This document shows positions 1-20,356 of a DNA stretch of 64,000 bases, in pieces. The position numbers were made by a program, and so were the translations under genes. The notes below the pieces were generated by a model. It searched no databases. It saw only the letters and a program-made list of their open reading frames with translations, and was not told where the DNA came from. The stretch is from Carpediemonas membranifera BICM (Eukaryota; Protista; Fornicata): NCBI GenBank assembly GCA_019828565.1, contig JAHDYR010000008.1, positions 124,001 through 188,000 of the forward strand, read 5' to 3'. Each line of letters begins with the position of its first letter. Position 1 is the first letter of the stretch.

Positions 1-1503
1 CAGGATCAAGAGCTCGGACCAATGGGAAGAGACTATAAGAGCATGCATGGGCGACCCAGTGAACAACAGGGGAGCAAAGGCAAGGGACAAAGTGTTCGGG
101 AACGGAGTGTGGAGCGAACTCCAGCGAACCCCATGGACAGAAATAGGCAACAGGACCTATGAGAGCCATCACAGAGCTGGCCCAAGGCGCTGACCTGAAG
201 AGAGAAATTAGCAGACTATGCCCCCTATGCTCGGAGGAGTCGGAGGTGAGCCTGTTCTACAGGATCATTAGGGAAAAGCCAGGACCAGCAAGGAAGCAGG
301 AAATGATCAGGGAGTGGGCAGAGGGCCAGAGGCTAGGATCGGCAGCGCACATAATCTGTGAATGCCCGGCAGTAGACAGGGGAGAAGCTTGGACAAAGCT
401 GTGGACAGCAGCGAAGCACAAAACTAAGGACTTGGAAGTAAGGCAGGGCCCCCAGGGCGAATGGTACCAGGAAAGACCCATCCTAGAATTACAGCAACTA
501 ATAATATGGGGCTCGGAGGACATTTGGGAAGGCCTCACGGCAGGACTACGGGAACTGGCAAAGGTTTACAACAGCTTCAAGGTGGAATAGAAGCATGTCA
601 TGAACCCCTGACTCCAGGACCGGGAAGGGATGGACAAGGAATCAGCCATGGACCACCCTCGCTGGTGCTAAGCTCCTGGGATCAGTGAGGAAAGGCCCCA
701 CGTATCCCGGTAGCCAGGAACCAAAGCAAGGGAAGGAACGACTGCAAGGAAATAACAGGAAGGACAGACCAGAAATAAGAAAGAAAGGACATGCGACAAG
801 GACAGAGCAAGGATAAGGTCAAGGAAATCCATATTCATATGGTTGCACCACTCGTTGGGACCCCAAGGAAACTGCAGGGACTGGCCACGGGGGTCGGAGG
901 GGCACAGGTGCCCCTGCCGCCCTTGTTAACGACATGGGAAACCAAGGACATGTAGTGCAAGCGAAATGTTGTAAGGGGTAACAGGACAACCAGGCCTAGT
1001 GCCTGGGGGTACACCACCCATGCCCTGACCCACGCCACCTAACCGGGGTAGACAGCATGGACTTAGTCACTTTCCCCGCCTTCGGGTAGGCTTCTTAACA
1101 GAGTCGAGGGGGCATGGAATTGGGGAACCGGACAGACGAGAGGGTGCCGTGGCTGAACGGCTCTGCAAGGACTGCAGGGAAGCAAGGAGTGTCATAGTCA
1201 AGGTTCTGCAGGACGATCCTGCCTGTCAATGCCCCGAGGACAGACCCCCAGGCTCCCCGGATAGTTGCCGGACTTTCAGGGAGACAGGAAAGCATATTTG
1301 CACGGAGATGGCCGCAGGGCCTCTGGGGCGATTGGAATCGGCTTTCCGCGGAGACAGTAGCACCGAAAGCCCAAGGCAAACGCTGCTGACCAGTTTGCCA
1401 CGGGAAATAGGCAGTACCCCGGGGCACTCAGCTCCAAGACAACGGGAAACAAGCTCAGTCCGGGGTCAGAATCCAAGCACCATAAATTTATTTATTATTA
1501 TTT
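1..1503 (+). mobile_element. 3' part of RT-less LINE-like element, copy 1 (continues off the left edge)
   Basis: Reverse complement of 3960-5463. ORF translations are identical, with one 1-bp indel near 781/4682. Ends in the T-rich tail ATTTATTATTATTT (1490-1503), joined sharply to YR-retrotransposon sequence at 1504. Confidence 0.9.
159..590 (+). CDS. LINE-type C-terminal zinc-knuckle protein (copy 1)
   Basis: LCPLC...AAHIICECP resembles the Cx2C...Hx3CP knuckle at the end of non-LTR ORF2 proteins. Identical to 4874-5305. Confidence 0.7.
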   Translation: MRAITELAQGADLKREISRLCPLCSEESEVSLFYRIIREKPGPARKQEMIREWAEGQRLGSAAHIICECPAVDRGEAWTKLWTAAKHKTKDLEVRQGPQGEWYQERPILELQQLIIWGSEDIWEGLTAGLRELAKVYNSFKVE

Positions 1504-1505
1504 CT

Positions 1506-3353
1506 TCACATCTCGCAGCAGATGCGTCGCCAGCTCAACAGCTGGCTAGCGCTGCTCAGAGATCGTCCATCCAGACCCTTCGCTCAGGCCAGGGCAGACT
1601 GGGAGATCAAGGACGAACTCCAGCTCTCGGTCGCATCCGACGCGTCCTCCTTCGCGTGGGGCGCCTGCCTATTCAACGGCGACCAGGGCCGCTCGGCTCA
1701 AGGCCGCTTTCCTCCCGAGTTCCGAGACTCTCATATCGGAGTCAAGGAGCTCTACGCGATTGGCCAGGCTATCAAGCTCACCCCAACCCAGCGCACCAGG
1801 ACCCAACTAGCTATCTTTTCGGACAACACCGCGGCCATCGCATGGGTCAACCGCCAGGGCTCCCCATGTCTCGCCGACACGGCCATTCGACTCCTGCAGG
1901 ATATCTTCACCACGGCGAACACGAAGAATGTCGATATTCACTGCTTCCATATCGCAGGGCACCTCAATGTCCAGGCGGACCGGCTGTCGAGATTCGCAAA
2001 GCTCGATTGGCACTCACCCCGCGAGGTACTCGAGACGATAATGGCCAAGTGGGGTCCGGCGGAGATAGACGTCACTGCATCTCCGGACAAGAAGCTCGCA
2101 CTGCCAGGATTCGTCAGGAAAGCTTGGTCCCTCGACGATCACGGCTTCCAGCGCTCCTGGACCGGCGCCAGGATCTATCTGGCTCCGCCGACAGCGCTCT
2201 TGGGAGCGGCACATCGTCGTCTGGAGAAGATTCGGACGCCTCAGACCCCGACTACGTCCCCTCGGACGTGGAGGTCAGCGGCAATACTCCTCTTCCCCGA
2301 TCTCAACTCACCCGAAGTCAGAGCGCTGAAACGGCTGTCCCAACACAAGATGTATCTCAGAGTCCACTCCTCGCACATGCTCAACACGGAGCTATCCTGG
2401 ACCGAGAGGCAAGGAAAGATCAGAATGATTGCGATGATCGTCAAGACCCGTTCGACGAACTCCTCCGCCACGACAGGCTATCTCACTTCCGAAACGAGTC
2501 ATCGCGCCGCTCAGCGGCTGGCTGGGTCTCTAAGTTCGTCCTATCGCGACAGGCAGCCCTCTCCGACGCCGAACAACTCAGAGCATTCCTCCTCGCCGAG
2601 GGCGAGACCACTGGCCCGCAGAGTATCCACAGAAAGGGCTACTGGATCTGTCAAGCGGCTCCACTCGTCTCCAACTGGCGACCTCCGCCAGAAGCCAGGC
2701 AGATCATCAAGAGTGCGGAGAACGTAGCATCTCTCGACGGCCTAACAGGAGGCGCACTACCGGTGACCAGAGCCCAGGTCCGCAAGGTCGTCGACAGGCG
2801 ACGCTCCTCACCGAAAGCGTTCCAGGTAGCGCTGTTCGCTGCACTTACATTCATCTCAGTCAGCCGGGGAGGCGAGATCTTCGGCCTGACGAGAGGCGAC
2901 ATCTCTTTCGATGAACAGGGCAACGCTATGCTCTGGTTCCCCCGCACCAAGACGGCCAAGGGCATCCATAAGCTTATTCCTAACAGGTCATGGGACCGCT
3001 TCAACCCGGCAAGAGCCCTCAAGGCCTGGGTCCCAACTGCGACGCGACACAATTCCGACTCGATCTGGCGCATGATCGGTCCATCGGGAGGTATATCACT
3101 CACGTGTCCACTTGCAGCGTCCACCCTCCGCACATGGATCCACAGCGCCTTCGGCCCGAGCGTTTCATGGCACTCCTTCCGCAAGGGGGCAGCTACTGAG
3201 CTGGCAGTGGCCAACACAAACACGGAGGTCCTCCTTTCAATGGGCACGTGGTCATCTACGAAGAGCATGCTGAGGTACATGGGTAACGGGGTACGCACCC
3301 ATCCAGGGGTCCAGGGTCACCTGGCCTCAATTCTACTACAACCACCACTCTAA
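1506..3353 (+). CDS. Tyrosine recombinase frame, copy 1
   Basis: SVSRGGE (R), RTKT (K), WHSFRKG (HxxR), MGTW...MLRY (W/Y). The ORF-track start at 1149 lies in the inserted element. Confidence 0.88.
   Translation, partial: SHLAADASPAQQLASAAQRSSIQTLRSGQGRLGDQGRTPALGRIRRVLLRVGRLPIQRRPGPLGSRPLSSRVPRLSYRSQGALRDWPGYQAHPNPAHQDPTSYLFGQHRGHRMGQPPGLPMSRRHGHSTPAGYLHHGEHEECRYSLLPYRRAPQCPGGPAVEIRKARLALTPRGTRDDNGQVGSGGDRRHCISGQEARTARIRQESLVPRRSRLPALLDRRQDLSGSADSALGSGTSSSGEDSDASDPDYVPSDVEVSGNTPLPRSQLTRSQSAETAVPTQDVSQSPLLAHAQHGAILDREARKDQNDCDDRQDPFDELLRHDRLSHFRNESSRRSAAGWVSKFVLSRQAALSDAEQLRAFLLAEGETTGPQSIHRKGYWICQAAPLVSNWRPPPEARQIIKSAENVASLDGLTGGALPVTRAQVRKVVDRRRSSPKAFQVALFAALTFISVSRGGEIFGLTRGDISFDEQGNAMLWFPRTKTAKGIHKLIPNRSWDRFNPARALKAWVPTATRHNSDSIWRMIGPSGGISLTCPLAASTLRTWIHSAFGPSVSWHSFRKGAATELAVANTNTEVLLSMGTWSSTKSMLRYMGNGVRTHPGVQGHLASILLQPPL
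1522..2727 (+). pseudogene. Truncated RNase H + methyltransferase-like part of the pol ORF (RT separated by the insertion)
   Basis: VASDASSFAWG, HIGVKELYAI, FSDNTAA, NVQADRLSR. Identical to the C-terminal 401 aa of 10974-13124. Confidence 0.85.
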
Positions 3354-3490
3354 ATCACGACGGGAGTCGTGGGGCAGTGACGATTAGCACGGTACCGACA
3401 TTCTTGGACGCGAACCCTCGAGGGGTTGGTCGGGGGGCCCACCTGCGTGCCTGTGGGCCAACCATTGTTAGCACGTTGCCGGCGGGATAT

Positions 3491-3536
3491 CCCCGTTGGT
3501 TAATGAAAAGAATGTCATGAGGCTAGGATAGCTAGC
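3491..3536 (+). repeat. Split direct repeat B (46 bp) of YR element copy 1
   Basis: CCCCGTTGGTTAATGAAAAGAATGTCATGAGGCTAGGATAGCTAGC, also at 13888-13933 and 14204-14249. Confidence 0.9.
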
Positions 3537-3697
3537 TGGCGCTACATCGTCAGTAAGGTTACCTCGGGTAACGGGCCCGGAGCGGAGGGCGATGCGATAG
3601 CCTCACTCCGGGCAAAAGGTGTTTCGCCGGTCAGGCGAGTCACGCAGTTTATGCGGACAGAATGGCGCAAGGTTCGGATCCGCCGGATCCGACGGCA
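3537..3697 (+). repeat. Split direct repeat A (~161 bp), shared by copy 1 (as A2) and copy 2 (as A1)
   Basis: Identical to 13934-14094. Contains the gag ATG at 3662. Confidence 0.8.
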
Positions 3698-3959
3698 ACA
3701 CGCTTAGATAAGCTAGAAGCTTCAATCAATTCCATGTCCGAAGCCCTAAACAGGCTTGCTCCTCCGCCTCCGCCAGAGAAAGAACCTGACGACGAAATGC
3801 TCGAAAGTTCCACCGTTGCTAGGTTCAATACCTCCGAATCGTTGGAGGAGGACACGATGGAGGACATAGATGCAACTCTGGCAGAGATGGACACCTTCTC
3901 GGAGTTACCAAGCAAGAGACCTCTCAAGGCAGAAGCGAAGTGGCTTCAACGCGTTGTCG
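3662..3959 (+). pseudogene. gag-like ORF, 5' half (interrupted)
   Basis: Removing 3960-10690 restores the frame ...KWLQRVV-VITSALPD..., giving ~184 aa. Its position upstream of RT is typical of DIRS gag. Confidence 0.75.
3943..3959 (+). repeat. Target-site duplication, left copy (17 bp GCTTCAACGCGTTGTCG)
   Basis: Exact repeat at 10674-10690 flanking the insertion. Confidence 0.92.
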
Positions 3960-4873
3960 AAAGAAAAAGAAAGAAATTTATGGTGCTTGGATTCTGACCC
4001 CGGACTGAGCTTGTTTCCCGTTGTCTTGGAGCTGAGTGCCCCGGGGTACTGCCTATTTCCCGTGGCAAACTGGTCAGCAGCGTTTGCCTTGGGCTTTCGG
4101 TGCTACTGTCTCCGCGGAAAGCCGATTCCAATCGCCCCAGAGGCCCTGCGGCCATCTCCGTGCAAATATGCTTTCCTGTCTCCCTGAAAGTCCGGCAACT
4201 ATCCGGGGAGCCTGGGGGTCTGTCCTCGGGGCATTGACAGGCAGGATCGTCCTGCAGAACCTTGACTATGACACTCCTTGCTTCCCTGCAGTCCTTGCAG
4301 AGCCGTTCAGCCACGGCACCCTCTCGTCTGTCCGGTTCCCCAATTCCATGCCCCCTCGACTCTGTTAAGAAGCCTACCCGAAGGCGGGGAAAGTGACTAA
4401 GTCCATGCTGTCTACCCCGGTTAGGTGGCGTGGGTCAGGGCATGGGTGGTGTACCCCCAGGCACTAGGCCTGGTTGTCCTGTTACCCCTTACAACATTTC
4501 GCTTGCACTACATGTCCTTGGTTTCCCATGTCGTTAACAAGGGCGGCAGGGGCACCTGTGCCCCTCCGACCCCCGTGGCCAGTCCCTGCAGTTTCCTTGG
4601 GGTCCCAACGAGTGGTGCAACCATATGAATATGGATTTCCTTGACCTTATCCTTGCTCTGTCCTTGTCGCATGTCCTTTCTTTTCTTATTTCTGGTCTGT
4701 CCTTCCTGTTATTTCCTTGCAGTCGTTCCTTCCCTTGCTTTGGTTCCTGGCTACCGGGATACGTGGGGCCTTTCCTCACTGATCCCAGGAGCTTAGCACC
4801 AGCGAGGGTGGTCCATGGCTGATTCCTTGTCCATCCCTTCCCGGTCCTGGAGTCAGGGGTTCATGACATGCTT

Positions 4874-5305
4874 CTATTCCACCTTGAAGCTGTTGTAAAC
4901 CTTTGCCAGTTCCCGTAGTCCTGCCGTGAGGCCTTCCCAAATGTCCTCCGAGCCCCATATTATTAGTTGCTGTAATTCTAGGATGGGTCTTTCCTGGTAC
5001 CATTCGCCCTGGGGGCCCTGCCTTACTTCCAAGTCCTTAGTTTTGTGCTTCGCTGCTGTCCACAGCTTTGTCCAAGCTTCTCCCCTGTCTACTGCCGGGC
5101 ATTCACAGATTATGTGCGCTGCCGATCCTAGCCTCTGGCCCTCTGCCCACTCCCTGATCATTTCCTGCTTCCTTGCTGGTCCTGGCTTTTCCCTAATGAT
5201 CCTGTAGAACAGGCTCACCTCCGACTCCTCCGAGCATAGGGGGCATAGTCTGCTAATTTCTCTCTTCAGGTCAGCGCCTTGGGCCAGCTCTGTGATGGCT
5301 CTCAT
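4874..5305 (-). CDS. LINE-type C-terminal zinc-knuckle protein (copy 2)
   Basis: CPLC...HIICECP. Overlaps the end of the APE ORF in the +1 frame. Confidence 0.7.
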   Translation of the reverse strand: MRAITELAQGADLKREISRLCPLCSEESEVSLFYRIIREKPGPARKQEMIREWAEGQRLGSAAHIICECPAVDRGEAWTKLWTAAKHKTKDLEVRQGPQGEWYQERPILELQQLIIWGSEDIWEGLTAGLRELAKVYNSFKVE

Positions 5306-6365
5306 AGGTCCTGTTGCCTATTTCTGTCCATGGGGTTCGCTGGAGTTCGCTCCACACTCCGTTCCCGAACACTTTGTCCCTTGCCTTTGCTCCCCTGTTG
5401 TTCACTGGGTCGCCCATGCATGCTCTTATAGTCTCTTCCCATTGGTCCGAGCTCTTGATCCTGTTCAGCTTTGAGACTGTGACTGGCCCCTCCTTCTTTT
5501 TCATGGGCCAGGTGTGCACCTCGGGTATGGCCAGAGCCACGTCTCGCTCACTTCTGCCATAGTACCGTTGTTCCTTCCATGCTAGTGTGATTCCATTGTG
5601 TGCTGAGCCCCATACCCCGACCTTCTGAGACTCTACCACCTCAATCTCCGCCCCCTGGATTCCTGGTGTTGTCACTGCAAAGTCCGGGGTTGATGTTCCT
5701 GATGTGAGTGTCCCAGACTTGGGTATGATGGCTTTGAGCCTGTGCTTCTCCATCATATCCTTCCACCGGGTGGATCTTTCCATCTGGCCTGGGTCGATGT
5801 TCCAGTCTCCCATAATTATGGCCTCCATGCTCCCTTTCATGTCCATGATCTTCTGTATAGTGTCCCTGAATCCATCCTTCTCCTGCTTGCTGTGGCCGGA
5901 TGGAGGGCCATACACGTTGATGACTAGTATGTCCCTGCCGGTTCTCATTATGCTGGCTTGCACTCTTCCCGATAGGCTGTCCGATATGCCGATGTCCCAC
6001 TTTGCAGTTGCGTGTGGGCTCACTATCGTGCCGATGCCTTCCCTTGTTCCCTTCCATCTTGGCGCAGGTTCGTCATTGCCTGCTATGCCTAGTTGTCGGT
6101 TGATGCGGTGCTGACTTTTGACATCCGCCTTTCGTTTTTCGTTGGCTAAGACCAGGTCCTCTTCCGTCTCCCTCCCTGCTAGTGCGTAGTCAAGGTCCAT
6201 GAAGCAATGAACCCTCGTATTCGCCGTTCTCCATGTCTCTTGTATGAGTACTGCCTCTATGTCCTTCAACCTTAGCTGAATCGCCGTTGCCATAGACGCC
6301 GTGAAGTCCTTTCCTCTTCCTATGTGTCCCTCTGTGTTCAGACTAAGTATCTTGTAGGTTACCAT
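5271..6365 (-). CDS. Apurinic/apyrimidinic-type (EEP) retroelement endonuclease
   Basis: ILSLNTEG, VLIQETW, VINVYGP, IIMGDWN, TPDFAV and GSAH (SDH-like) motifs in canonical order. Confidence 0.88.
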   Translation of the reverse strand: MVTYKILSLNTEGHIGRGKDFTASMATAIQLRLKDIEAVLIQETWRTANTRVHCFMDLDYALAGRETEEDLVLANEKRKADVKSQHRINRQLGIAGNDEPAPRWKGTREGIGTIVSPHATAKWDIGISDSLSGRVQASIMRTGRDILVINVYGPPSGHSKQEKDGFRDTIQKIMDMKGSMEAIIMGDWNIDPGQMERSTRWKDMMEKHRLKAIIPKSGTLTSGTSTPDFAVTTPGIQGAEIEVVESQKVGVWGSAHNGITLAWKEQRYYGRSERDVALAIPEVHTWPMKKKEGPVTVSKLNRIKSSDQWEETIRACMGDPVNNRGAKARDKVFGNGVWSELQRTPWTEIGNRTYESHHRAGPRR

Positions 6366-6696
6366 TGCCTTTGTCCTGTTTCCTTATCCTGCGAATTCCC
6401 AGAATTTGGGAGCCCCAGCTTCCCGCTCCTCTCCTGCTATCCTTGTCCTGACAAGGGGCCTAGATGCCGGTCTCGGTGACCCTTGTCAGGCCAACCTTGT
6501 TACCACCTGGTGACCTTCCATTCTTCGGGCAGGGTACTTAGGAGGGGGACGATATGACGTGACCCCCCTTTGGCTGCCGCTACAGCCTACCGGCAGTGCA
6601 TTTCAGCTAATGCCGGGCCCTGGGTGGGAGCCAGGGCTTGTGAATTATAAAGAAAATGTTGCTTGTTCCTTGAAAGAATACTGCTTTACCATGTCC

Positions 6697-7647
6697 TTAC
6701 TCCTCCTCCGTGGACTCCCCACTGCCGCTGCAGCTGTCCTCGGCCTGACTCACTTGCTGTCCTTGTAGACTCTGCATTACCGTGATGAACTGGGTCATCA
6801 GGTCCATGGGTGAGATCTGCTTGGCCTTCTTAGCCTTCTTGTGCTTGTGCCGGGGGATCGTGGGCTTCTCCTTGCTGGGCTTAGTCGCGACGCCGGAGAG
6901 CACCAACCTTCCGTGGCCTTGCTCTTGCATGAGTCGGGCAGCCTTGAGCGCTGAGATCTCTTGTTGCGCCTCTGCCAACTGCTTTCGGAGCCGCAGCTTC
7001 TCCGAGTCCATGCCGGTTGCCTGTCTGCTTCCAGACTCCCAGTCCATGTCCTCTTCGTGCCTGCTTCTCTTTCCGCTGTCCGAGTCCATGATCCTACTCG
7101 TGCTGCCCTCCTTGCGCTTGAGCGTCGTGGAGGAAGAGTGATCCTTGCTGTTGTCCATGCCTCCCTCTGAGCCTCTACCGGCCCAGGTGTTCCCGCTGAA
7201 CGAGCCTCTCATCTGCGTTCCCGTGTTGTCCTGTCTCTCCCTGTCGTCTCCTCCGTGGTTACGATCCGAGGTCCTGTTCATGTTACCAGCTCTGTCGCCG
7301 GTTCTGTCGTCAGCTCTGACACCAGCTCTACCGCCGGCTCCGTGTCCTACCCTTCTGTCCTCTTCCCTGTCTCCATGCTGGTCGTGATGTCCTTGATCCG
7401 CGTCCTGGCCGAAGTGCCTGCCCACCATCCTGGTGCTAATCCGCCTCGCCTTTTCCTCCAGGCCGTTGTCGAAGAACCTACTTTGGTATGGCTGTTCGGA
7501 CTTTCCGTCGATGGTGGGGACATACGTGATGCCTGGGACATTGACTGTGTTGGCTCTGGGCTCGTCCGGGATAGCTGCCGAGACTAGTCTGGCCCCTTCC
7601 TTGCGCATGCGGCTTAGGATGGTCCCAGCCTCGCTGACCCTGACCAT
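6697..7647 (-). CDS. ORF1b: low-complexity/coiled-coil basic protein, probably the C-terminus of ORF1
   Basis: Overlaps ORF1a in the +1 frame. One base fewer in the C5 run at 7649-7653 fuses the two (~1125 aa). Confidence 0.6.
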   Translation of the reverse strand: MVRVSEAGTILSRMRKEGARLVSAAIPDEPRANTVNVPGITYVPTIDGKSEQPYQSRFFDNGLEEKARRISTRMVGRHFGQDADQGHHDQHGDREEDRRVGHGAGGRAGVRADDRTGDRAGNMNRTSDRNHGGDDRERQDNTGTQMRGSFSGNTWAGRGSEGGMDNSKDHSSSTTLKRKEGSTSRIMDSDSGKRSRHEEDMDWESGSRQATGMDSEKLRLRKQLAEAQQEISALKAARLMQEQGHGRLVLSGVATKPSKEKPTIPRHKHKKAKKAKQISPMDLMTQFITVMQSLQGQQVSQAEDSCSGSGESTEEE

Positions 7648-10075
7648 GCCCCCAGTCTCTCGGGATGAAGCTCGCCCCTAGGGTGATCCTACCCCTGTTC
7701 CTGGGGGCCTTGACGTTGACTATGACCTTCTCATAGTCCCTGAGGCTCTCTGCTAGGTCGTCGCAGCCCCAGACTCCTTGATGAGCCGTAGCCTCCTTCG
7801 AGGGCCACCACTCGTATAGCATGGCCATGGTTATGATGTCCTCCTCCCTTGCTGCCCCTAGGCCCTTCCTGACGCGTACCATGCGGAGCTGGTTAGCCGT
7901 GGCTCTTCCATGATGGTCCATAGTGGGCTTCTCTCCAGCACTCCTTCGTTGTCCATGATTGTGAGGGGGGGCCAGTAAGATGCCCTTCATGCCCAACAGA
8001 ACCTCCCCGAACCCGAAGCCGATGCCGAAGCGGTGTCCGTTGTCCGGGACTACGAGGATCCTGTCGCCGACTTCCCTGCTGACGTCCCTTGCGTCCCCGA
8101 TCGGGTACGTGCCGAAGATCTCAAAGGTGTCCCTCCTTGTCGCGAATTCCGGGCCTCCCATGATATCCATGCCCGGCTCCGCCTTCCCGACTGCTTCCAT
8201 GGTCTTGTCGAGTGCCTTACCCATGTAGTGGTAGACGTCTGGGGTGCTCATCCTCTCCTTGCATAGGGCCCTGATCCTGGCTGTGAAGACTACTGTATCC
8301 GCCAACCCACAGTGGTAGCAACCCGCGGTGTGTCTGTGGTACGGACAGACTCCCTTGGGCTCGCTCCTGTTCTGCCATCCATTTGACCATGTTGTTACTG
8401 CTTCCAGGTAGTTGGCCTTGTCGAGGTTGTCCCTGAGGTTTTGGCCAGCCTCCTCCTTGCCGTTGTTCTCCAGGATCTCTGGTAGCTTCTTCTCGTCCAC
8501 CAGCCTAGCTTGGAAGAATTCCCTGGTTCCTTGCTCCAGTCCATTTGTGGGGTTCGTGAGGAGGAAGCTTTCCATCTCCACCCCCTTTGCATACATGATT
8601 ATCTTCCAGCCCTCCGACCTTTCGATCCTTGCCAGCTGAGCCGCCAGGCGGTTGGCCCAGTCCCTGAAAGTATGTATGTGCTTCTCATACTCGATCGGCG
8701 GCCGCCCCGTCCCGACCTCCACGAAGGTGGCCGGCGGCAGCCCCGTCACTGCCCATGCCGTGTACCTCGCTTGGTCCATGCTTGCTGCCGGTATGTCCTG
8801 GTAATACAGGCCATGCCCGTGTCCAAGAATGTCCCCAGTGCTGAGGTCAAAGAGTACGATCCCGCCCTCAACCGGGATGGCAGGGATCCCTGCCTTCTTG
8901 ACGCCAGGGTCTGCGCACTCGAAGTCGATGGCTCCGATCACCAGCCGTTTCTCCTTGTCCTTTCTAGGCATCCTCGGCGGCTGGCTGCTGACCTTGTTTG
9001 AGTCGACCTCCTCGTCCTGGTCGATCTTGCCTTGGTTGGCCCCGACCATGTCCTTGTTCACTTCCAGGAGGCTGTCGTCGAGGCTTCTTCTGCCGGGCAT
9101 GGTGGCCTGCTGGCGTCGTTCCTCCTTGTCCTTGACATGTTGCTCCTCGTCTCCGTCGATGACCGTGCTAGCGGACGACCTGTCCAGATCGGCATGTTCG
9201 TCCCTATTGCTGCGGACCGAGGTGGCCTTGAGCACTTCCAGCCTCACCTTCCGGAACGGCGGCTCGTTGCTAAGGGGGGTCTCCTCCCCTTCGCCCAGGA
9301 TATTGGTTCTGCCCTTCAGGTAGATCCCTGACTTGTTCCATGCTGCCTGCCATATGGCCGGGGCCTCCGGTGCCTGAAGCCTGAGGATGTCCCTAGCCTC
9401 CTCCATGAAGCGGCTGATGGACCATGCTGACGTGTCGCTTAGCTCTAGGATGACCCTGTACTTGCCGTCCTCTTGCTCGTAGGCCACTCTGGTGACCGGG
9501 CCTTGGTTTGCCGGATCCCATACCTTGTCGTAAGGCACGCCTTCTACGGCCTCGTCTCCATGAGCCCCTGATACCAGTATGAACGACCCTTCGGCCTTCT
9601 TGACGCTGTCCCTGTCTACATCCCATTCGATGGGCCCATCTTCCTTCGGCTTGAGGATCGCCGTCTCGATGTCCTTCTCAGATGGCCATCTTGCCATGCC
9701 AGTGAAGCCCGCTTTCAGCGTCTTGGGCTCCAGTGCCTGTGCCATGTCCTTTGCTTCCTCGTCTCTGGGGTTGAGCGCCTCTGTGAGCATGTAGAAAAGG
9801 TCGCGGAGGCCGTGGATGCCGCATGGGTTCCTGAGGATGATGTCCTTGTTGTCAGTGACGCCGGTTGCGAAGAGGATGCGTCTGGCGTTCATGATTACTT
9901 CCTTGCGTCCTTTGGAGTTCGCATTGAGCGACTTTCCTGTAAACTTGCCTGTTCTACGAAGAAGTAGAGTCCTTGAATCGTTCCTTTCAGCGAGGAAGCT
10001 GTCCAGTAGTTCCCTGATGTCCTCCCACTGCTTCTGCGTGGACTCCCTGATCCTTGTCGGTATTTCTACCTGCAT
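7478..10075 (-). CDS. ORF1a with a Maelstrom-like DEDDh nuclease domain (~8260-8950)
   Basis: AIDFE...IPVEGGIVLFDLSTGDI...H...TGLPP...AKGVEME...CPYH...HCGLAD, the pattern of protist MAEL domains. Confidence 0.72.
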   Translation of the reverse strand: MQVEIPTRIRESTQKQWEDIRELLDSFLAERNDSRTLLLRRTGKFTGKSLNANSKGRKEVIMNARRILFATGVTDNKDIILRNPCGIHGLRDLFYMLTEALNPRDEEAKDMAQALEPKTLKAGFTGMARWPSEKDIETAILKPKEDGPIEWDVDRDSVKKAEGSFILVSGAHGDEAVEGVPYDKVWDPANQGPVTRVAYEQEDGKYRVILELSDTSAWSISRFMEEARDILRLQAPEAPAIWQAAWNKSGIYLKGRTNILGEGEETPLSNEPPFRKVRLEVLKATSVRSNRDEHADLDRSSASTVIDGDEEQHVKDKEERRQQATMPGRRSLDDSLLEVNKDMVGANQGKIDQDEEVDSNKVSSQPPRMPRKDKEKRLVIGAIDFECADPGVKKAGIPAIPVEGGIVLFDLSTGDILGHGHGLYYQDIPAASMDQARYTAWAVTGLPPATFVEVGTGRPPIEYEKHIHTFRDWANRLAAQLARIERSEGWKIIMYAKGVEMESFLLTNPTNGLEQGTREFFQARLVDEKKLPEILENNGKEEAGQNLRDNLDKANYLEAVTTWSNGWQNRSEPKGVCPYHRHTAGCYHCGLADTVVFTARIRALCKERMSTPDVYHYMGKALDKTMEAVGKAEPGMDIMGGPEFATRRDTFEIFGTYPIGDARDVSREVGDRILVVPDNGHRFGIGFGFGEVLLGMKGILLAPPHNHGQRRSAGEKPTMDHHGRATANQLRMVRVRKGLGAAREEDIITMAMLYEWWPSKEATAHQGVWGCDDLAESLRDYEKVIVNVKAPRNRGRITLGASFIPRDWGHGQGQRGWDHPKPHAQGRGQTSLGSYPGRAQSQHSQCPRHHVCPHHRRKVRTAIPK

Positions 10076-10215
10076 TGTTGAGTGCAAAATTTCTCCCCTT
10101 TCCTAGTCCATAAACTGGGTCGGAATTTTTGGGTCCGAAAGTCGGGCCACATGTACATATCCGGGTGAGGTCTCCGTCCAGGCCTTCCAGTTTCTCCCAT
10201 TGTCCATGCTCCGTA

Positions 10216-10673
10216 CTATATAGGCCATTCTTTCCAAAAAGGCGCGGTCCTAAAAATGCGTCGCCCTTTTCTGAGTAGCGGGGCCTTTCTGTGTAGTTGT
10301 TGTTGCTTTGTTCGTAGTCTCCTTTTAGCCTCTATCGACGGCCCCTGTTTCCCTTTTGTGCTGCCCTTCCTTCCTTGTGGTCTTGACAAAACCATGTAGC
10401 CGCCGGTGCTAGCACTGGCCCTCGACGGTTGTTTTCCTTTTCCTTGTAAACATACGTTCCATGAAGACACTTTGATTCCTTGGTATGGGCGTGGAGCTCC
10501 CACTCGCGCCCAGCGGTATGCCCTGATAGCAACCCTTGAATGTTCAGACAGGAGGCCAAGGCCGCTCCTTCTGAGCTCCATGGGGCACTGCCCTATCCAT
10601 ATAGGCCAGGCCTGTTGGTCCTTGTCCATCCATGATCGAAGTGTTTCCACTTTGCTGAAATCATTGGTGAACT
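10216..10673 (-). CDS. Possible upstream ORF, open through the element's 5' junction (5'-truncated?)
   Basis: The frame is open from the TSD to 10216. No recognisable motif. Confidence 0.3.
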
Positions 10674-10690
10674 GCTTCAACGCGTTGTCG
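10674..10690 (+). repeat. Target-site duplication, right copy
   Basis: Identical to 3943-3959. Confidence 0.92.
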
Positions 10691-10947
10691 TGATCACTAG
10701 TGCTCTCCCAGATTCCGCGACGAAACAACGTCTTCTTCTCGAACTACAGGCTCGTAGAATGGTCCTAGACCTCAAAGATGATAACTGGTCCGATGCCACG
10801 ACCGAGCTGTTTCAGGACCTCTTCAACAGCACAGAAAGCAAGAGCAGCCGCACCATCGCTTACTGCGCAGCGAAAGCCCGCTCTAAGGGCAGGCGTAAGG
10901 ACACCAACGGTAACATGGGGGGGTTTCACAAGAAGAAGAGAACATAA
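10690..10947 (+). pseudogene. gag-like ORF, 3' half
   Basis: In frame with 3662-3958 across the TSD. Basic C-terminus. Confidence 0.75.
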
Positions 10948-13750
10948 CAACCTCTGTTCATCAATTCCCGTCGATGAACGCGAGGTGGTGGTTATGGGAA
11001 AGGCTCGGCGCCTCGGACGAGGTGGTCGGCTGGCTCCGTCACGGCGTACCTATCAAGCTAACAGGCACTCCCCCGCCACCCACGCCACAACGGCGCCTGG
11101 ACCCACGGCTCACCCCAAAGCTCGACGAGATGGTCCGACTCGGCGTGATCTCACCCTGTACCAGCGGGCAACTCCGGCACAGTGCCCCGCTCTTCGCGGT
11201 TGCAAAGGGCGAGCACGATGTCCGCCCGGTACACGACCTACGCGACCTCAACGCAATCACTGCGGAGACGCGGGTCTTCCGGCTCTTCGGCCTAAAACGA
11301 GCAGTGCGCAACCTCAAGCGCAACGACTTCATGCTCAAGATCGACTTAGCCTCCGGCTACCACCAGATGGGTGTGGCTCCGACCGACTCCACGCTACTGG
11401 GGATCGTCCTCCCGAACGGGCAGGCGTACAGATACAACACACTAGGGTTCGGCTGGACCGCTGCCCCGTTCGTGTTCCAGTCTACGTCCATCCAGCTAGC
11501 AAAGATACTCGCGAACCGCTTCAACGTGACAATAGCGGTGTACCTCGACGACTTTCTCATCTCACATCGGTCACGTCGCCACCTAGCAGACGCCGCTCCC
11601 CAAATAGTCGCGCTCATGAGGTCGCTGGGAGCTATCCCAGGGCTCAACAAGTGCATCCTAACTCCCACACAACGCCTGGAGTACCTAGGAGTCACCATCA
11701 ACACAGCCGCCGAGACACTGCAGATTTCCAAGGACAGAGCCGATCGCTATGCAACATCAATCGAGCAGGCCCTCAGGGCCGGCAGGATCGATGCAACCGA
11801 GTGGCAACGCCTACTAGGCCGCCTCTCGTTCTTCGCAAGTACGACACAGTTCGCCAGGCTCCAGCTCAGATCACTCCAGGCCCTACATCCCGCCCCGACG
11901 CTTCACATCTCGCAGCAGATGCGTCGCCAGCTCAACAGCTGGCTAGCGCTGCTCAGAGATCGTCCATCCAGACCCTTCGCTCAGGCCAGGGCAGACTGGG
12001 AGATCAAGGACGAACTCCAGCTCTCGGTCGCATCCGACGCGTCCTCCTTCGCGTGGGGCGCCTGCCTATTCAACGGCGACCAGGGCCGCTCGGCTCAAGG
12101 CCGCTTTCCTCCCGAGTTCCGAGACTCTCATATCGGAGTCAAGGAGCTCTACGCGATTGGCCAGGCTATCAAGCTCACCCCAACCCAGCGCACCAGGACC
12201 CAACTAGCTATCTTTTCGGACAACACCGCGGCCATCGCATGGGTCAACCGCCAGGGCTCCCCATGTCTCGCCGACACGGCCATTCGACTCCTGCAGGATA
12301 TCTTCACCACGGCGAACACGAAGAATGTCGATATTCACTGCTTCCATATCGCAGGGCACCTCAATGTCCAGGCGGACCGGCTGTCGAGATTCGCAAAGCT
12401 CGATTGGCACTCACCCCGCGAGGTACTCGAGACGATAATGGCCAAGTGGGGTCCGGCGGAGATAGACGTCACTGCATCTCCGGACAAGAAGCTCGCACTG
12501 CCAGGATTCGTCAGGAAAGCTTGGTCCCTCGACGATCACGGCTTCCAGCGCTCCTGGACCGGCGCCAGGATCTATCTGGCTCCGCCGACAGCGCTCTTGG
12601 GAGCGGCACATCGTCGTCTGGAGAAGATTCGGACGCCTCAGACCCCGACTACGTCCCCTCGGACGTGGAGGTCAGCGGCAATACTCCTCTTCCCCGATCT
12701 CAACTCACCCGAAGTCAGAGCGCTGAAACGGCTGTCCCAACACAAGATGTATCTCAGAGTCCACTCCTCGCACATGCTCAACACGGAGCTATCCTGGACC
12801 GAGAGGCAAGGAAAGATCAGAATGATTGCGATGATCGTCAAGACCCGTTCGACGAACTCCTCCGCCACGACAGGCTATCTCACTTCCGAAACGAGTCATC
12901 GCGCCGCTCAGCGGCTGGCTGGGTCTCTAAGTTCGTCCTATCGCGACAGGCAGCCCTCTCCGACGCCGAACAACTCAGAGCATTCCTCCTCGCCGAGGGC
13001 GAGACCACTGGCCCGCAGAGTATCCACAGAAAGGGCTACTGGATCTGTCAAGCGGCTCCACTCGTCTCCAACTGGCGACCTCCGCCAGAAGCCAGGCAGA
13101 TCATCAAGAGTGCGGAGAACGTAGCATCTCTCGACGGCCTAACAGGAGGCGCACTACCGGTGACCAGAGCCCAGGTCCGCAAGGTCGTCGACAGGCGACG
13201 CTCCTCACCGAAAGCGTTCCAGGTAGCGCTGTTCGCTGCACTTACATTCATCTCAGTCAGCCGGGGAGGCGAGATCTTCGGCCTGACGAGAGGCGACATC
13301 TCTTTCGATGAACAGGGCAACGCTATGCTCTGGTTCCCCCGCACCAAGACGGCCAAGGGCATCCATAAGCTTATTCCTAACAGGTCATGGGACCGCTTCA
13401 ACCCGGCAAGAGCCCTCAAGGCCTGGGTCCCAACTGCGACGCGACACAATTCCGACTCGATCTGGCGCATGATCGGTCCATCGGGAGGTATATCACTCAC
13501 GTGTCCACTTGCAGCGTCCACCCTCCGCACATGGATCCACAGCGCCTTCGGCCCGAGCGTTTCATGGCACTCCTTCCGCAAGGGGGCAGCTACTGAGCTG
13601 GCAGTGGCCAACACAAACACGGAGGTCCTCCTTTCAATGGGCACGTGGTCATCTACGAAGAGCATGCTGAGGTACATGGGTAACGGGGTACGCACCCATC
13701 CAGGGGTCCAGGGTCACCTGGCCTCAATTCTACTACAACCACCACTCTAA
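10778..13750 (+). CDS. Tyrosine recombinase (long frame overlapping the whole pol ORF)
   Basis: R-K-HxxR-W-Y catalytic set in the last ~200 aa. True start unknown. Confidence 0.92.
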   Translation: MITGPMPRPSCFRTSSTAQKARAAAPSLTAQRKPALRAGVRTPTVTWGGFTRRREHNNLCSSIPVDEREVVVMGKARRLGRGGRLAPSRRTYQANRHSPATHATTAPGPTAHPKARRDGPTRRDLTLYQRATPAQCPALRGCKGRARCPPGTRPTRPQRNHCGDAGLPALRPKTSSAQPQAQRLHAQDRLSLRLPPDGCGSDRLHATGDRPPERAGVQIQHTRVRLDRCPVRVPVYVHPASKDTREPLQRDNSGVPRRLSHLTSVTSPPSRRRSPNSRAHEVAGSYPRAQQVHPNSHTTPGVPRSHHQHSRRDTADFQGQSRSLCNINRAGPQGRQDRCNRVATPTRPPLVLRKYDTVRQAPAQITPGPTSRPDASHLAADASPAQQLASAAQRSSIQTLRSGQGRLGDQGRTPALGRIRRVLLRVGRLPIQRRPGPLGSRPLSSRVPRLSYRSQGALRDWPGYQAHPNPAHQDPTSYLFGQHRGHRMGQPPGLPMSRRHGHSTPAGYLHHGEHEECRYSLLPYRRAPQCPGGPAVEIRKARLALTPRGTRDDNGQVGSGGDRRHCISGQEARTARIRQESLVPRRSRLPALLDRRQDLSGSADSALGSGTSSSGEDSDASDPDYVPSDVEVSGNTPLPRSQLTRSQSAETAVPTQDVSQSPLLAHAQHGAILDREARKDQNDCDDRQDPFDELLRHDRLSHFRNESSRRSAAGWVSKFVLSRQAALSDAEQLRAFLLAEGETTGPQSIHRKGYWICQAAPLVSNWRPPPEARQIIKSAENVASLDGLTGGALPVTRAQVRKVVDRRRSSPKAFQVALFAALTFISVSRGGEIFGLTRGDISFDEQGNAMLWFPRTKTAKGIHKLIPNRSWDRFNPARALKAWVPTATRHNSDSIWRMIGPSGGISLTCPLAASTLRTWIHSAFGPSVSWHSFRKGAATELAVANTNTEVLLSMGTWSSTKSMLRYMGNGVRTHPGVQGHLASILLQPPL
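10974..13124 (+). CDS. Reverse transcriptase - RNase H - DNA adenine methyltransferase-like polyprotein (DIRS type)
   Basis: RT: LFAVAK, RPVHDLRDLN, KIDLASGYHQ, LGFGWTAAP, YLDD, LEYLG. RNase H: SDAS/KEL/SDN/NVQADRLSR. MT-like: DW...IDVTAS...SW...IYLAPP. Confidence 0.95.
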   Translation: MNARWWLWERLGASDEVVGWLRHGVPIKLTGTPPPPTPQRRLDPRLTPKLDEMVRLGVISPCTSGQLRHSAPLFAVAKGEHDVRPVHDLRDLNAITAETRVFRLFGLKRAVRNLKRNDFMLKIDLASGYHQMGVAPTDSTLLGIVLPNGQAYRYNTLGFGWTAAPFVFQSTSIQLAKILANRFNVTIAVYLDDFLISHRSRRHLADAAPQIVALMRSLGAIPGLNKCILTPTQRLEYLGVTINTAAETLQISKDRADRYATSIEQALRAGRIDATEWQRLLGRLSFFASTTQFARLQLRSLQALHPAPTLHISQQMRRQLNSWLALLRDRPSRPFAQARADWEIKDELQLSVASDASSFAWGACLFNGDQGRSAQGRFPPEFRDSHIGVKELYAIGQAIKLTPTQRTRTQLAIFSDNTAAIAWVNRQGSPCLADTAIRLLQDIFTTANTKNVDIHCFHIAGHLNVQADRLSRFAKLDWHSPREVLETIMAKWGPAEIDVTASPDKKLALPGFVRKAWSLDDHGFQRSWTGARIYLAPPTALLGAAHRRLEKIRTPQTPTTSPRTWRSAAILLFPDLNSPEVRALKRLSQHKMYLRVHSSHMLNTELSWTERQGKIRMIAMIVKTRSTNSSATTGYLTSETSHRAAQRLAGSLSSSYRDRQPSPTPNNSEHSSSPRARPLARRVSTERATGSVKRLHSSPTGDLRQKPGRSSRVRRT

Positions 13751-13887
13751 ATCACGACGGGAGTCGTGGGGCAGTGACGATTAGCACGGTACCGACATTC
13801 TTGGACGCGAACCCTCGAGGGGTTGGTCGGGGGGCCCACCTGCGTGCCTGTGGGCCAACCATTGTTAGCACGTTGCCGGCGGGATAT

Positions 13888-13933
13888 CCCCGTTGGTTAA
13901 TGAAAAGAATGTCATGAGGCTAGGATAGCTAGC
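13888..13933 (+). repeat. Split direct repeat B1
   Basis: 46 bp identical to 14204-14249. Confidence 0.9.
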
Positions 13934-14094
13934 TGGCGCTACATCGTCAGTAAGGTTACCTCGGGTAACGGGCCCGGAGCGGAGGGCGATGCGATAGCCT
14001 CACTCCGGGCAAAAGGTGTTTCGCCGGTCAGGCGAGTCACGCAGTTTATGCGGACAGAATGGCGCAAGGTTCGGATCCGCCGGATCCGACGGCA
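13934..14094 (+). repeat. Split direct repeat A2
   Basis: Identical to 3537-3697. Diverges from the gag sequence at 14095. Confidence 0.85.
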
Positions 14095-14203
14095 CGGTAC
14101 CAGTTACGACTGGTATACTCCTTCTCCCTCGGTAAGCGGAGAGGACTTCACGTTTAACTTACACTAGCTTCCTCGTTAACATTGTGTAAATTAAGCGCCC
14201 CCC

Positions 14204-14249
14204 CCCCGTTGGTTAATGAAAAGAATGTCATGAGGCTAGGATAGCTAGC
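14204..14249 (+). repeat. Split direct repeat B2 (right end of element)
   Basis: Copy of B1 emerging from a C10 run (14198-14207) and ending in GCTAGC. Unique sequence follows. Confidence 0.9.
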
Positions 14250-18784: not shown

Positions 18785-20356
18785 TTATTGAGGGGTTGGG
18801 TCGACATCGACTGGGGTGATCTCCTTCCACGTGCTGGGTGCCTCTTCCTCGACCAGCTTAGCCGTGCCATCCGACACTTTTGCCACGCTGAACCATTGGT
18901 CGGCTGAGTCGCGGAACTCAATACAAGCACGGCCATCGTGATCATTGAACGCTGTCGCCTCAATAGGGGCAATGCAGAGCTTATCCCAAGCGTTGAAGGA
19001 GTGGGTGACGCCCTCGGTCACCCTGAGAATCTGATCATGATAGAAAAAGAACCCCTTGGCCCTCTCTGGGAACTGGAGCGGGGTGGGTGTGAGGCAGATG
19101 TCGCCCCTGCTATGGCCCGGCAGCAGGCCCGACTGGGCGATATGAGGTGTAACTGGGCCAGCGAAGAGCAGCTGGCGGTCGCTGAGGAAGACAGCAAAGT
19201 TCTCTTCATATGTCACGATCCGGTCGACCCTGTAGGGCAGGTCGACGAACCGTGACATCTCATTCTGGTGCCCGAGCCCCAACCGGCCACAATCATTTCT
19301 CCCACTGATCATCTGCCGATTGCCCATGGAAAGTATGACAGTCGATGAAAAGAAACCTCCGTCATGCATGATGTGATCTGGGACAAAGTCAGTGGGCACA
19401 GCGACTGGGTGGAAGAGATGGCTGTTGTCCTGCTCGACTTCGCCGGTAAACCATAAAGCCATGAAGCCACTCATGACAGTGCCGACCGGGGTGAGTATGA
19501 AAGTCTGATCTCCCTTCATCGACACATCAGTTACCATCCTGTGCTTTTCCCAGGGGGCTGGCCTAGAGCTTGGCGATCTTGGGAAAGCTGGGGAAGGTGA
19601 GGCGGGTCGGGTCGACGAACCCAGATGACTTAAACCCCAGCAGACCAAGATTGTTGCCCCCCAGCCCCACAGGCCCTTGGGCGTCCTGGCGATGTGGGCG
19701 GTTTCACCGCTGTAGACCTCGAGGGCCCTGGGCATCCTAGCCCTGGTGAAGACGGTGTGGTGCTTCGTGTAGAGCATGAAGAGTCTGCCCATGTACACCA
19801 GTGACAGCAGAGTTCACCAGCGTAGCTCTCGCCGTCCTTCTCGGCGACGTTCACCGTGAAGAAGAACTTGCGGCAGAGGAGCCAAAGGCACTTGGCCTTG
19901 GGCATGTTGAGCTCTCTGTGCTTGATCTTTAGCCTGTCCTCGAGGTCGGGGTTGGCCCTGCCACCCAGCAGACACGCCCACACCGCGCCCTGGTTGAGCG
20001 TGTGCATGGCGGCAGGGAGCTCCTGCACAGCCGTGAGCTCAACGTTCATGGACAGTGGGGGGCCATCTGTGAGGATCGAGCGGGCGCGGTCGAGGAGGCG
20101 TTGAGCGCTTGGTTCGAGAGGTGGGATCTCTAAGAGCGTGGCGACGAGGGACGACGAGAGAAGTGACGCTTGTTGGCGTGGTAATGCTCTCTTCGTTGTT
20201 GTCTGAGGGTATTTCCTCGTCAAAATGCCTGGAGCAGGCGTGCTGGAGTAAAGATGGGATGTCCCCGGAGATAGAGGCCGTTAAGGTGAGCGCGGCGCGG
20301 AATGCAGAGATCAGCGCATCTCTAGTATCTGCTGGCGAGGAACTAGCGGTGCTCAT
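18785..20356 (-). pseudogene. RCC1/BLIP-II-like repeat family gene, frameshifted paralogue of 57582-59291
   Basis: Shared GDIPSL, AQRLLDRARSILTDGP.LSMNVELT, ANPDL and GRLGLGH are split over several frames. 10-bp tandem duplication near 20142-20161. PTRLTF lies in an alternate frame followed by TAG. Confidence 0.8.

Follow-up and report, generated by a model that had tools for sequence, protein, structure and literature searches.

The elements without reverse transcriptase (RT) found in a 64,000-nt stretch of Carpediemonas membranifera DNA (the window: contig JAHDYR010000008.1, positions 124,001 to 188,000 of the forward strand) are copies of an ordinary LINE that carry an internal deletion, the RT being present in other family members in the genome. 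The deleted form (type A) is probably a non-autonomous LINE derivative that occurs in tyrosine recombinase (YR) retrotransposons mainly through survival in dispensable piles of transposable elements. Its two window copies break different units (A and B) of a head-to-tail pair of PAT/DIRS-like YR elements (YR1), in opposite orientations (Table 1).

Table 1. Features of the LINE derivatives and of their YR1 host. Positions are those of the window. TSD, target-site duplication; RH, RNase H; A and B, split direct repeats of YR1. Type A junction: point at which the sequences flanking the deleted RT domain are joined.
Feature	Position	Strand	Remarks
Copy 1, 3′ 1.5 kb of type A LINE derivative	1-1503	+	Start at C9:114761, 9.2 kb upstream of the window
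Copy 1, type A deletion junction	141-172	+	RT domain (full-length 5370-7315) absent
Copy 1, T-rich 3′ tail, ATTT/ATT units	1490-1503	+
Copy 1, TSD, 3′ copy: CTTCACATCTCG + CAG microhomology	1504-1518	+	5′ copy: L032 749-760
YR1 unit A, 3′ part: RH region, YR domain (2451-3314), B1 (3491-3536), A (3537-3697)	1504-3697	+	100% identical to 11901-14094
A repeat (A2 of unit A, A1 of unit B)	3537-3697	+	Holds the ORF1 start codon at 3662
YR1 unit B, ORF1, codons 1-99 (gag position, no recognisable domain)	3662-3959	+	Resumes at 10691-10947
Copy 2, TSD, left copy: CTTCAACGCGTTGTCG, 16 nt	3944-3959	+
Copy 2, complete type A LINE derivative, 6,715 bp	3960-10674	-	Antisense to the YR element
Copy 2, type A deletion junction	5292-5323	-
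Copy 2, APE-type endonuclease domain, inside ORF 6365-5271	5589-6269	-	Exo_endo_phos_2, E 3.3e-7
Copy 2, LINE ORF1 region, two overlapping frames	6697-10087	-	No Pfam match
Copy 2, TSD, right copy: CTTCAACGCGTTGTCG	10675-10690	+
YR1 unit B, ORF1, codons 100-184	10691-10947	+
YR1 unit B, RT-RH ORF	10974-13124	+	RVT_1 at 11205-11699, E 2.8e-19; empty copy 1 site at 11900/11901
YR1 unit B, tyrosine recombinase domain	12848-13750	+	R..HxxR..Y conserved in alignment with four other families
YR1 3′ split direct repeats: B1 (13888-13933), A2 (13934-14094), spacer, B2 (14204-14249, element end)	13888-14249	+

The parent of type A is an 8.66-kb non-LTR retrotransposon encoding an APE-type endonuclease and an RT. 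Type A (6,715 bp) corresponds to its positions 1-5369 and 7316-8654, with more than 98.8% identity. The 1,946 bp that are missing encode the RT. What remains is the 5′ end, ORF1 region and APE endonuclease, followed by the end of ORF2 and a 1.1-kb 3′ end whose tail is of the (CTTT)n type. At least six copies run on past element position 5367 through 1.95 kb encoding RVT_1 (E 5.8e-33) and rejoin the 3′ end after it. The best solved relatives of this RT are human LINE-1 ORF2p (E 4e-17) and R2 proteins. The family has the features of APE-type LINEs: an N-terminal APE endonuclease (Exo_endo_phos_2, E 3.3e-7) followed by a LINE-type RT in ORF2, no terminal repeats, a simple-repeat 3′ tail, variable TSDs and frequent 5′ truncation, the last indicated by 107 3′ ends for 46 5′ ends in the genome.

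Type A shares both ends with this LINE and lacks the RT. An RT probe found 46 copies genome-wide, more than 99% identical to type A; the type A junction is found at five loci and that of a second deletion (type B) at 16. The same type A junction at five loci, with TSDs that differ where both ends are intact (as in the window copies), indicates that the deleted form itself was copied. The earlier note had counted two copies; five carry the exact deletion, in a family with 107 3′ ends. Several one-off deletions coexist with the two deletion lineages. Splicing was rejected as the source of the deletions: neither the type A nor the type B junction has GT..AG ends, and microhomology of 1-5 nt is found instead. 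An intact autonomous source LINE presumably exists; against this reading, the APE-RT frame is broken in all six readable RT-bearing copies, at differing positions and possibly through assembly noise.

That both window copies lie inside YR elements, at different sites and in opposite orientations, is confirmed by exact TSDs (12 + 3 bp for copy 1, 16 bp for copy 2) and by empty sites in the sister unit. In self-BLAST, window positions 1-1504 are the reverse complement of 3959-5463 (99.67% identity) and 1504-3697 are identical to 11901-14094 over 2,194 bp. The upstream junction of copy 1 was looked for in 20 kb of upstream sequence and has the predicted structure: YR RT sequence ending in CTTCACATCTCG directly precedes the start of the copy, and these 12 nt recur just after its tail (1504-1515). 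Three further nucleotides (CAG) are common to the LINE 5′ end and give an apparent 15-nt duplication. Each copy disrupts a different YR ORF, as had been proposed. Copy 1 lies at codon 309/310 of the RT-RH ORF, 67 codons past the RVT_1 match (codons 78-242) and about 110 nt short of the region alignable to a sister family's RNase H. Copy 2 splits the 184-codon ORF1 at codon 99/100; ORF1 is unbroken in the sister unit. Copy 1 itself hosts a gypsy element of 4,021 bp, which makes a three-level nest.

From its domains and termini, the host YR1 is assigned to the DIRS order as a PAT/Ngaro-like YR retrotransposon. Like elements of this type, it has the order ORF1, RT-RNase H, tyrosine recombinase and the split direct repeats A1 ... 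B1-A2-B2 (A, 161 bp; B, 46 bp), one A repeat being common to the head-to-tail units. It differs from them in its length (about 4.0 kb), in a YR frame that continues without stops through most of the RT-RH ORF, which is read in a different frame, and in that a methyltransferase domain was not seen. The Phage_integrase match has an E of 3e-4 in YR1 and of 1.8e-12 in the sister family YR3; the motifs SRGGEI, HSFRxG and Y line up across YR families. The RNase H of YR1 is assigned by alignment to YR3, which matches Pfam RNase H models. Pfam and PDB searches with a 990-aa ORF (10778-13750) gave no RT; its first ~700 residues are an R/P/S-rich out-of-frame overlap of the RT-RH ORF. The RT found in the latter led to rejection of an RT-less Crypton as host.

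The window copies belong to a 36-kb transposon pile that contains the YR1 array, a tRNA-Arg(CCG) gene, two gypsy elements and another YR element. No LINE sequence was found by self-BLAST in positions 14,250-64,000, at least 74% of which lies within ORFs of at least 250 aa; the absence of copies from about 50 kb of host genes, reported earlier, therefore holds.

Genome-wide, the TSDs are 12-16 bp long and their sequences are unrelated (12 junction pairs). No common target motif was found among these pairs, and a sequence-specific target is not supported. The TSDs always begin with C or T, as would be expected if the target pairs with the CTTT tail; most family members have a (CTTT)n tail. In the preferred reading, full-length members would supply the RT in trans: it would copy type A RNA by target-primed reverse transcription, at nicks for which hardly any particular sequence is needed. 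The two window copies would have landed independently in the two units of the head-to-tail YR1 array. Selection would purge insertions in genes or short intergenic spacers, and this would be why copies are found in the pile while the neighbouring 50 kb of genes is free of them. YR arrays would offer large blocks of dispensable DNA; YR elements are one of several kinds of host.

Flanking sequence was classified for 23 copies; the remaining ~84 copies, an inverted pair on C63 and the large gaps in split YR1 copies were assessed from their coordinates. The host DNA is a YR element (8 copies), another LINE family (4), in or beside a gypsy element (5) or another multi-copy repeat (at least 2; these repeats have ~20 and more than 40 genomic copies). 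Other repeats thus house at least 19 of the 23 copies, and for none was a location in unique DNA shown; the safe-haven alternative raised in the earlier note fits these data best. The eight YR-hosted copies (four sense, four antisense) lie in at least four diverged families. Two are at the RH-YR junction and two in the YR domain; the other four are in ORF1, ahead of the RT, in the linker between RT and RH, and in the 3′ UTR, one each. A shared hot spot was considered for the copies on C26 and C68, both near the RH-YR junction, and rejected, the other six sites being elsewhere. No fixed target position was found: there are at least seven positions in at least four families, and at least 11 of the 23 copies are in non-YR repeats. 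Megablast saw YR flanks at only two or three loci and understated the association; the fuller count is from a protein-level search.

The earlier note took a lack of YR enrichment as refuting a preference for these elements. An excess does exist, although it is modest, non-exclusive and explicable without targeting. Among the loci listed (at least 133 YR and the best 150 gypsy), and in counts inflated by linked insertions, a YR domain lies no more than 5 kb from a flank in 14 of the 107 copies, for ~3.4 expected under uniformity (about fourfold, p about 1e-5), and 5 lie near gypsy integrases for 4.2 expected, which is no excess. Copies per listed locus number 0.105 for YR and 0.033 for gypsy (p = 0.017; 0.043 with linked pairs collapsed). 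A pure safe haven predicts a similar density in all transposon DNA; furthermore, YR and gypsy loci are not co-clustered, which makes it too simple to say that everything piles together. A class-level integration bias of the LINE family to YR arrays, due to chromatin, replication or nick structure, or transcription and not to sequence recognition, is accordingly possible, though unlikely. Besides the excess, it would account for 8 of 23 copies in diverged YR families that, at ~4 kb per listed locus, make up about 2-6% of the genome, for two independent insertions within 2.5 kb in the window and for the C63 pair, the second inverted LINE pair found around a YR domain. Against it, most copies are elsewhere, the sites are scattered with both orientations equally frequent, and larger YR arrays (for 49% of the listed YR loci the next one is at most 5 kb away) are better havens anyway. 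Long copies are also more often YR-associated (7/23) than the remaining, mostly 5′-truncated ones (7/84; p = 0.011); a bias would not be expected to lead to this since truncation follows target choice, and the difference points to post-insertion selection. RT-bearing and type A copies lie in YR elements in 7 of 10 cases and type B copies in 0 of 6 (p = 0.011, a post-hoc comparison), which is unexpected both under survival and under a family-wide bias. It is doubtful, but conceivable, that this LINE lineage, at least in its RT-bearing and type A members, prefers YR arrays of any family via a chromatin or DNA-structure feature and is a class-level parasite of tRNA-anchored YR piles; C. membranifera is said to be without several canonical DNA-processing complexes.

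A dedicated hyperparasite that borrows the YR RT, or enters circular or cDNA intermediates of YR elements and spreads along with them, is highly improbable. In its favour are the contact of three of the five type A copies with YR elements and the disruption of YR ORFs by both window insertions; against this, the other two are gypsy-associated (C19; C65, weakly), the parent LINE has an RT of its own (46 copies), and the ends, the tail and the 12-16-bp duplications are of the target-primed reverse transcription type. The junction of copy 2 with YR1 is found once in the 24.2-Mb genome, which means that the composite has not multiplied, and neither site (position 1211-1225 for copy 1) is interrupted in any other YR1 copy: the idea of riding YR circles is not supported. 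Mis-joining of identical repeats (2.2 kb at 100%, 1.5-kb inverted arms) by the assembler is even harder to credit: assemblers do err at long perfect repeats, and the many single-base indels between copies resemble long-read noise, yet both insertions have exact TSDs and empty sites in the sister unit, and the same architecture is found at other loci, each with its own duplications. Least credible of all is a domesticated host device against YR elements. It was suggested by the breaking of an essential YR ORF by each window copy; it is contradicted by copies that are numerous, very young and frame-broken at different places, by gypsy elements nested in them, by LINEs, gypsy elements and other repeats interrupted equally, and by the lack of a single conserved host locus.

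HAL1 (half-L1) of mammals is an internal-deletion derivative of a LINE. NARTc (of L1Tc) and RIME (of ingi) are non-autonomous LINE deletion derivatives of trypanosomes (PMC5814959, PMC1874656). Like these three elements, type A has termini common with a LINE of its own genome, no RT and ordinary TSDs, and was amplified after the deletion (junctions at five loci; type B, 16). Unlike them, it is much larger (6.7 kb) and has lost the RT core alone, with the APE endonuclease and all of the ORF1 region retained; its family also differs in combining at least two deletion lineages with one-off deletions, trans-mobilisation being the presumed route. Tx1L of Xenopus inserts into another transposon, and the LINE described here is likewise located within another mobile element. 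Target-specific APE LINEs are found in the Tx1 and R1 clades (PMC4640811). Their defining feature is absent here: target sequence, position and orientation all vary, and most copies are in other kinds of repeats. A literature search found no precedent for a LINE targeting DIRS-like elements. DIRS-1 of Dictyostelium is confined to heterochromatic centromeres (PMC7192593), and tRNA genes are targeted in compact genomes (PMC5006619). As in these protist safe-site systems, the genome is compact and retrotransposons are heaped in piles, here beside a tRNA gene and with YR arrays; unlike in these systems, the nested guest is an untargeted LINE and not the YR element itself.

The exotic reading as hyperparasite or anti-transposon device is thus replaced by a documented kind of element: a LINE that sheds RT-deleted, probably still-mobile derivatives. 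The quantitative signal that remains is a 3- to 4-fold excess in YR over gypsy elements. Outside other transposons, the LINE family hardly survives in this very compact genome, and the transposon ecology of the protist includes two amplified non-autonomous lineages, three-level nests and YR arrays as sinks.

Two units (A and B) of YR1, a PAT/DIRS-like tyrosine-recombinase (YR) retrotransposon family, lie head to tail and are each interrupted by one LINE copy. Self-comparison of the window aligns 1-1504 with the opposite strand of 3959-5463 (99.67%) and shows 1504-3697 to be identical to 11901-14094 (100% over 2,194 bp). The two copies differ in insertion site and are opposite in orientation, as read earlier from the sequence alone; both junctions and the vacant sister sites confirm this. 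Copy 1 is flanked at either side by CTTCACATCTCG, plus 3 nt (CAG) also found in the LINE's own start; the duplication predicted at its 5′ end, upstream of the window, is present in the 20 kb read there. Its site, codon 309/310 of the RT-RNase H ORF, is downstream of the RVT_1 match (codons 78-242) and upstream of a stretch aligning with the RNase H of the sister family YR3; unit B runs unbroken through 11900/11901. The duplication bordering copy 2 is 16 nt long (CTTCAACGCGTTGTCG). This copy cuts ORF1 of unit B at codon 99/100; its site is vacant in unit A, where the 184-codon ORF1 is unbroken. The earlier note saw no copy in the gene-rich remainder of the window and self-comparison detects none; at least 74% of this remainder is long ORFs, the first being a family-B DNA polymerase gene.

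Coordinates of the nested insertions and of other features. Plain numbers are window positions. C9, contig of the window; C11, C26, C54 and C63, other contigs of the assembly; L031 and L032, extracted stretches of C9.
Feature	Coordinates	Strand	Remarks
YR unit A	L031 9069 to L032 763, then 1504-3697	+	Window plus 20 kb upstream
LINE copy 1, inside YR unit A	C9:114761 to 1503	+, sense to YR genes	Upstream 20 kb read
Gypsy element inside copy 1	L032:4026-8046 (C9:118026-122046)	-	Ty3/gypsy, 4,021 bp; 80-bp LTRs; rve, RVT_1, RNase H; duplication ~5-6 bp
YR unit B	ends 14249		Head to tail after unit A
A repeat	3537-3697		Common to both units
LINE copy 2, inside YR unit B	3960-10674	-
Target duplication of copy 2	3944-3959 and 10675-10690
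Endonuclease ORF of copy 2	6365-5271	-
3′ tails of copies 1 and 2	1490-1503; 3960-3973		Equal total length
46-bp unit (three times)	3491-3536; 13888-13933; 14204-14249		Window self-comparison
YR1 RT-RNase H ORF	10974-13124
YR1 recombinase ORF	10778-13750		990 aa
tRNA-Arg(CCG) gene	L031:4006-4079 (C9:108006-108079)		In transposon pile; gypsy elements either side
Short direct repeats	19943-20148 / 58801-59006		79-84% identical; gene-rich part
Short direct repeats	21343-21502 / 59718-59877		98% identical; gene-rich part; both pairs keep the same order at their two places
Inverted LINE pair	C63:656390-663582		Coordinates only
Tandem LINE units	C54:165305-222788		Coordinates only; period ~16.25 kb
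Split YR1 copies	C26:1075346/1101734; C11:404976/440304; C11:441942/450164		Coordinates only; inserts 26 kb, 35 kb and 8.2 kb

The YR1 unit without LINE is ~4.0 kb long, with termini (A1 ... B1-A2-B2) that form PAT/Ngaro-like split direct repeats. Its RT-RNase H ORF matches RVT_1 (E 2.8e-19). The tyrosine recombinase is encoded by the final 300 codons of the 990-aa ORF (Phage_integrase, E 3e-4); its SRGGEI, HSFRxG and Y motifs align across four other families. Pfam and PDB searches of this ORF gave no RT because its initial 700 codons overlap the RT-RNase H ORF out of frame. The recombinase frame is open for 700-1,200 codons over the RT-RNase H ORF in YR1, YR3 and flanks of other families (as at 10778-13750 and at L034:3794-5860, an extracted genome stretch); in two flanks, two frames are entirely open across 1.5 kb. 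DIRS-1 has long overlapping ORFs; the open frames are either ORFs of this kind or an unusual codon effect. The three split YR1 copies show a 15-bp overlap of YR coordinates, i.e. duplications of LINE size. A 3′ end of the LINE family is found in the 8.2-kb insert only, 680 bp from the junction; those of 26 kb and 35 kb may represent compound nests or LINEs of other families.

The element noticed as "RT-less" in the window (type A) arose by deletion from a resident LINE and is non-autonomous. Copy 2 encodes an APE-type endonuclease (Exo_endo_phos_2, E 3.3e-7). Searching the assembly (24.2 Mb, 69 contigs) with copy 2 gave many copies, six of which leave it after position 5367 and enter one common sequence; this encodes a LINE RT (RVT_1, E 5.8e-33). 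Among solved structures, the RT matches human LINE-1 ORF2p (E 4e-17) and R2 proteins best. The full-length LINE, known from two complete copies (C26:181027, C11:344419), is 8.66 kb long, and the window element is this LINE without positions 5370-7315. Probe censuses of the genome gave 107 3′ ends, 46 5′ ends and 46 copies of the RT region. The type A junction is found at five loci (C9 twice, C1, C19, C65) and that of type B, a second deletion lineage (positions 5362-7682 missing), at 16; several more deletions are one-off. A splice origin of the deletions was rejected, the junctions having no GT..AG ends. Since one junction recurs at several loci with differing target duplications, the type A form was itself retrotransposed. 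Its RNA would be copied by the RT of full-length relatives; RIME/ingi and NARTc/L1Tc, in which non-autonomous LINE derivatives are mobilised with the RT of relatives (PMC5814959, PMC1874656), represent the same situation, the trans use of RT being what we infer here. An intact source copy is presumed; none is among the six RT-bearing copies read, all six readable ones having frame breaks at differing positions, much of which may be assembly noise. The 3′ tails of the family are usually (CTTT)3-4; that of copy 1 consists of ATTT/ATT units.

Target duplications of the 12 copies with both junctions are 12-16 bp long and unrelated, giving no sequence-specific target; all they have in common is the opening base, C in 9 copies and T in 3, which fits a nicked strand pairing with the (CTTT)n tail. 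Flanks were classified for 23 copies. Eight are hosted by DIRS-like YR elements (at least four diverged families), five lie within or beside gypsy elements, four are in other LINE families or the same one, and two are in unclassified repeats (~20 and >40 genomic copies). Two have flanks coding related proteins (28% identity), probably another repeat; two are unclassified, one having part of a YR1 terminus 450 bp upstream. Unique DNA was shown as host for none of the 23. Those hosted by YR elements comprise both window copies (in YR1), two in YR3 (C26 and C11; differing sites, opposite orientations, vacant site on the same contig) and those of C68, C44, C26:1231713 and C1:773278. They occupy ORF1, the region before RT, the RT-RH linker, the RH-YR junction (twice), the YR domain (twice) and the 3′ UTR, four in sense and four in antisense. 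The unclassified host repeats are L029:1-1503 (C43:20660-22162) and L008:6872-8370 (C6:253853-255351), both extracted stretches; one, present ~20 times at 99-100% identity, has an open frame >500 aa without Pfam match; the other occurs in at least 16 copies at 91-100% and ~25 at 68%.

Gypsy in LINE copy 1 in YR unit A is a three-level nest. The C19 type A copy has integrase hits of equal score 3.9 kb apart (C19:105827, 109769), so insertions of the small gypsy family of copy 1 are probable in two type A copies out of five. The 36 kb around the nest hold two further gypsy elements, another YR element and the tRNA-Arg(CCG) gene, ~190 bp from which lies an 87-bp YR1 A-repeat fragment, consistent with a tRNA-anchored YR pile. 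On C63, a pair of RT-bearing LINE copies has its 3′ ends turned towards each other with a YR domain of another family between; the LINE ends are 2,456 bp apart vs 2,457 bp for the inverted pair in the window. On C54, full-length LINE 3′ ends, RT probes and 5′ ends recur four times; because a tandem segmental duplication carries the LINE, these copies are one insertion event. On C1, the 5′ ends of a type B (766646) and a type A copy (773277) face each other across 6.6 kb, with the same 98 bp ahead of both, inverted (L006:6857-6954, L002:1402-1499, extracted stretches), and a matching target duplication in the type B copy only. A YR element of a 69%-identical family separates the two copies; the arrangement resembles the outcome of an inverted duplication or of LINE copies recombining.

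A profile built from five YR domains puts the number of YR loci at 133 or more (371 first-look candidates); at ~4 kb each, they would make up roughly 2-6% of the genome. Gypsy integrase loci (Pfam rve) number at least 150 (716 candidates). Among the loci listed, 11 of 100 listed LINE 3′ junctions have a YR domain no more than 5 kb away in the flank vs 2.2 expected, and 3 have rve vs 2.8 expected. With 5′ junctions added, the distinct copies are 14 near YR domains (~3.4 expected, p ~1e-5) and 5 near rve (~4.2 expected, p = 0.41). LINE occupancy per listed locus is 0.105 for YR vs 0.033 for rve (p = 0.017; 0.043 with two linked pairs collapsed); some LINE copies are non-independent, e.g. the full-length ones that occur once in every 16.25-kb unit of the four on C54. 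Listed YR loci tend strongly to arrays, 49% having another one no more than 5 kb away, and do not co-cluster with listed gypsy loci. The YR excess is thus real vs a uniform genome and vs gypsy, but modest, and the weight of 8/23 depends on the base-pair share of YR in tolerated DNA: p = 0.2-0.6 if this were 25-35%, p = 0.015 if 15%. The genome-wide enrichment that the earlier note asked to test therefore holds as an excess, not as exclusivity, at least 11 of the 23 hosts being other LINEs, gypsy elements or other repeats.

That note had put forward a hyperparasite borrowing the RT of the YR element or travelling with it, or a domesticated device of the host against transposons. The element is no borrower of RT, being a LINE derivative with an RT in its full-length relatives, and no host device, being multi-copy, broken in frame and equally present in LINEs, gypsy elements and other repeats. 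The LINE is not carried along by the YR element, since the genome has a single copy 2/YR junction and no other YR1 copy is interrupted at the site of copy 1. A moderate, genuine integration bias towards YR arrays would account for the excess near listed YR loci while rve stays at expectation, but the association falls with shorter copies (7/23 long copies vs 7/84 others, p = 0.011); because 5′ truncation comes after target choice, such a dependence on length suggests that selection acts once the copies are inserted. The bias is the less probable reading, at about one chance in five. The safe-haven alternative fits the hosts of the 23 copies best. YR arrays, the commonest but far from sole host, are bigger dispensable blocks than single gypsy copies between genes, and the best explanation for finding the LINE in YR elements is that, where genes are packed so densely, copies survive in piles of transposons.
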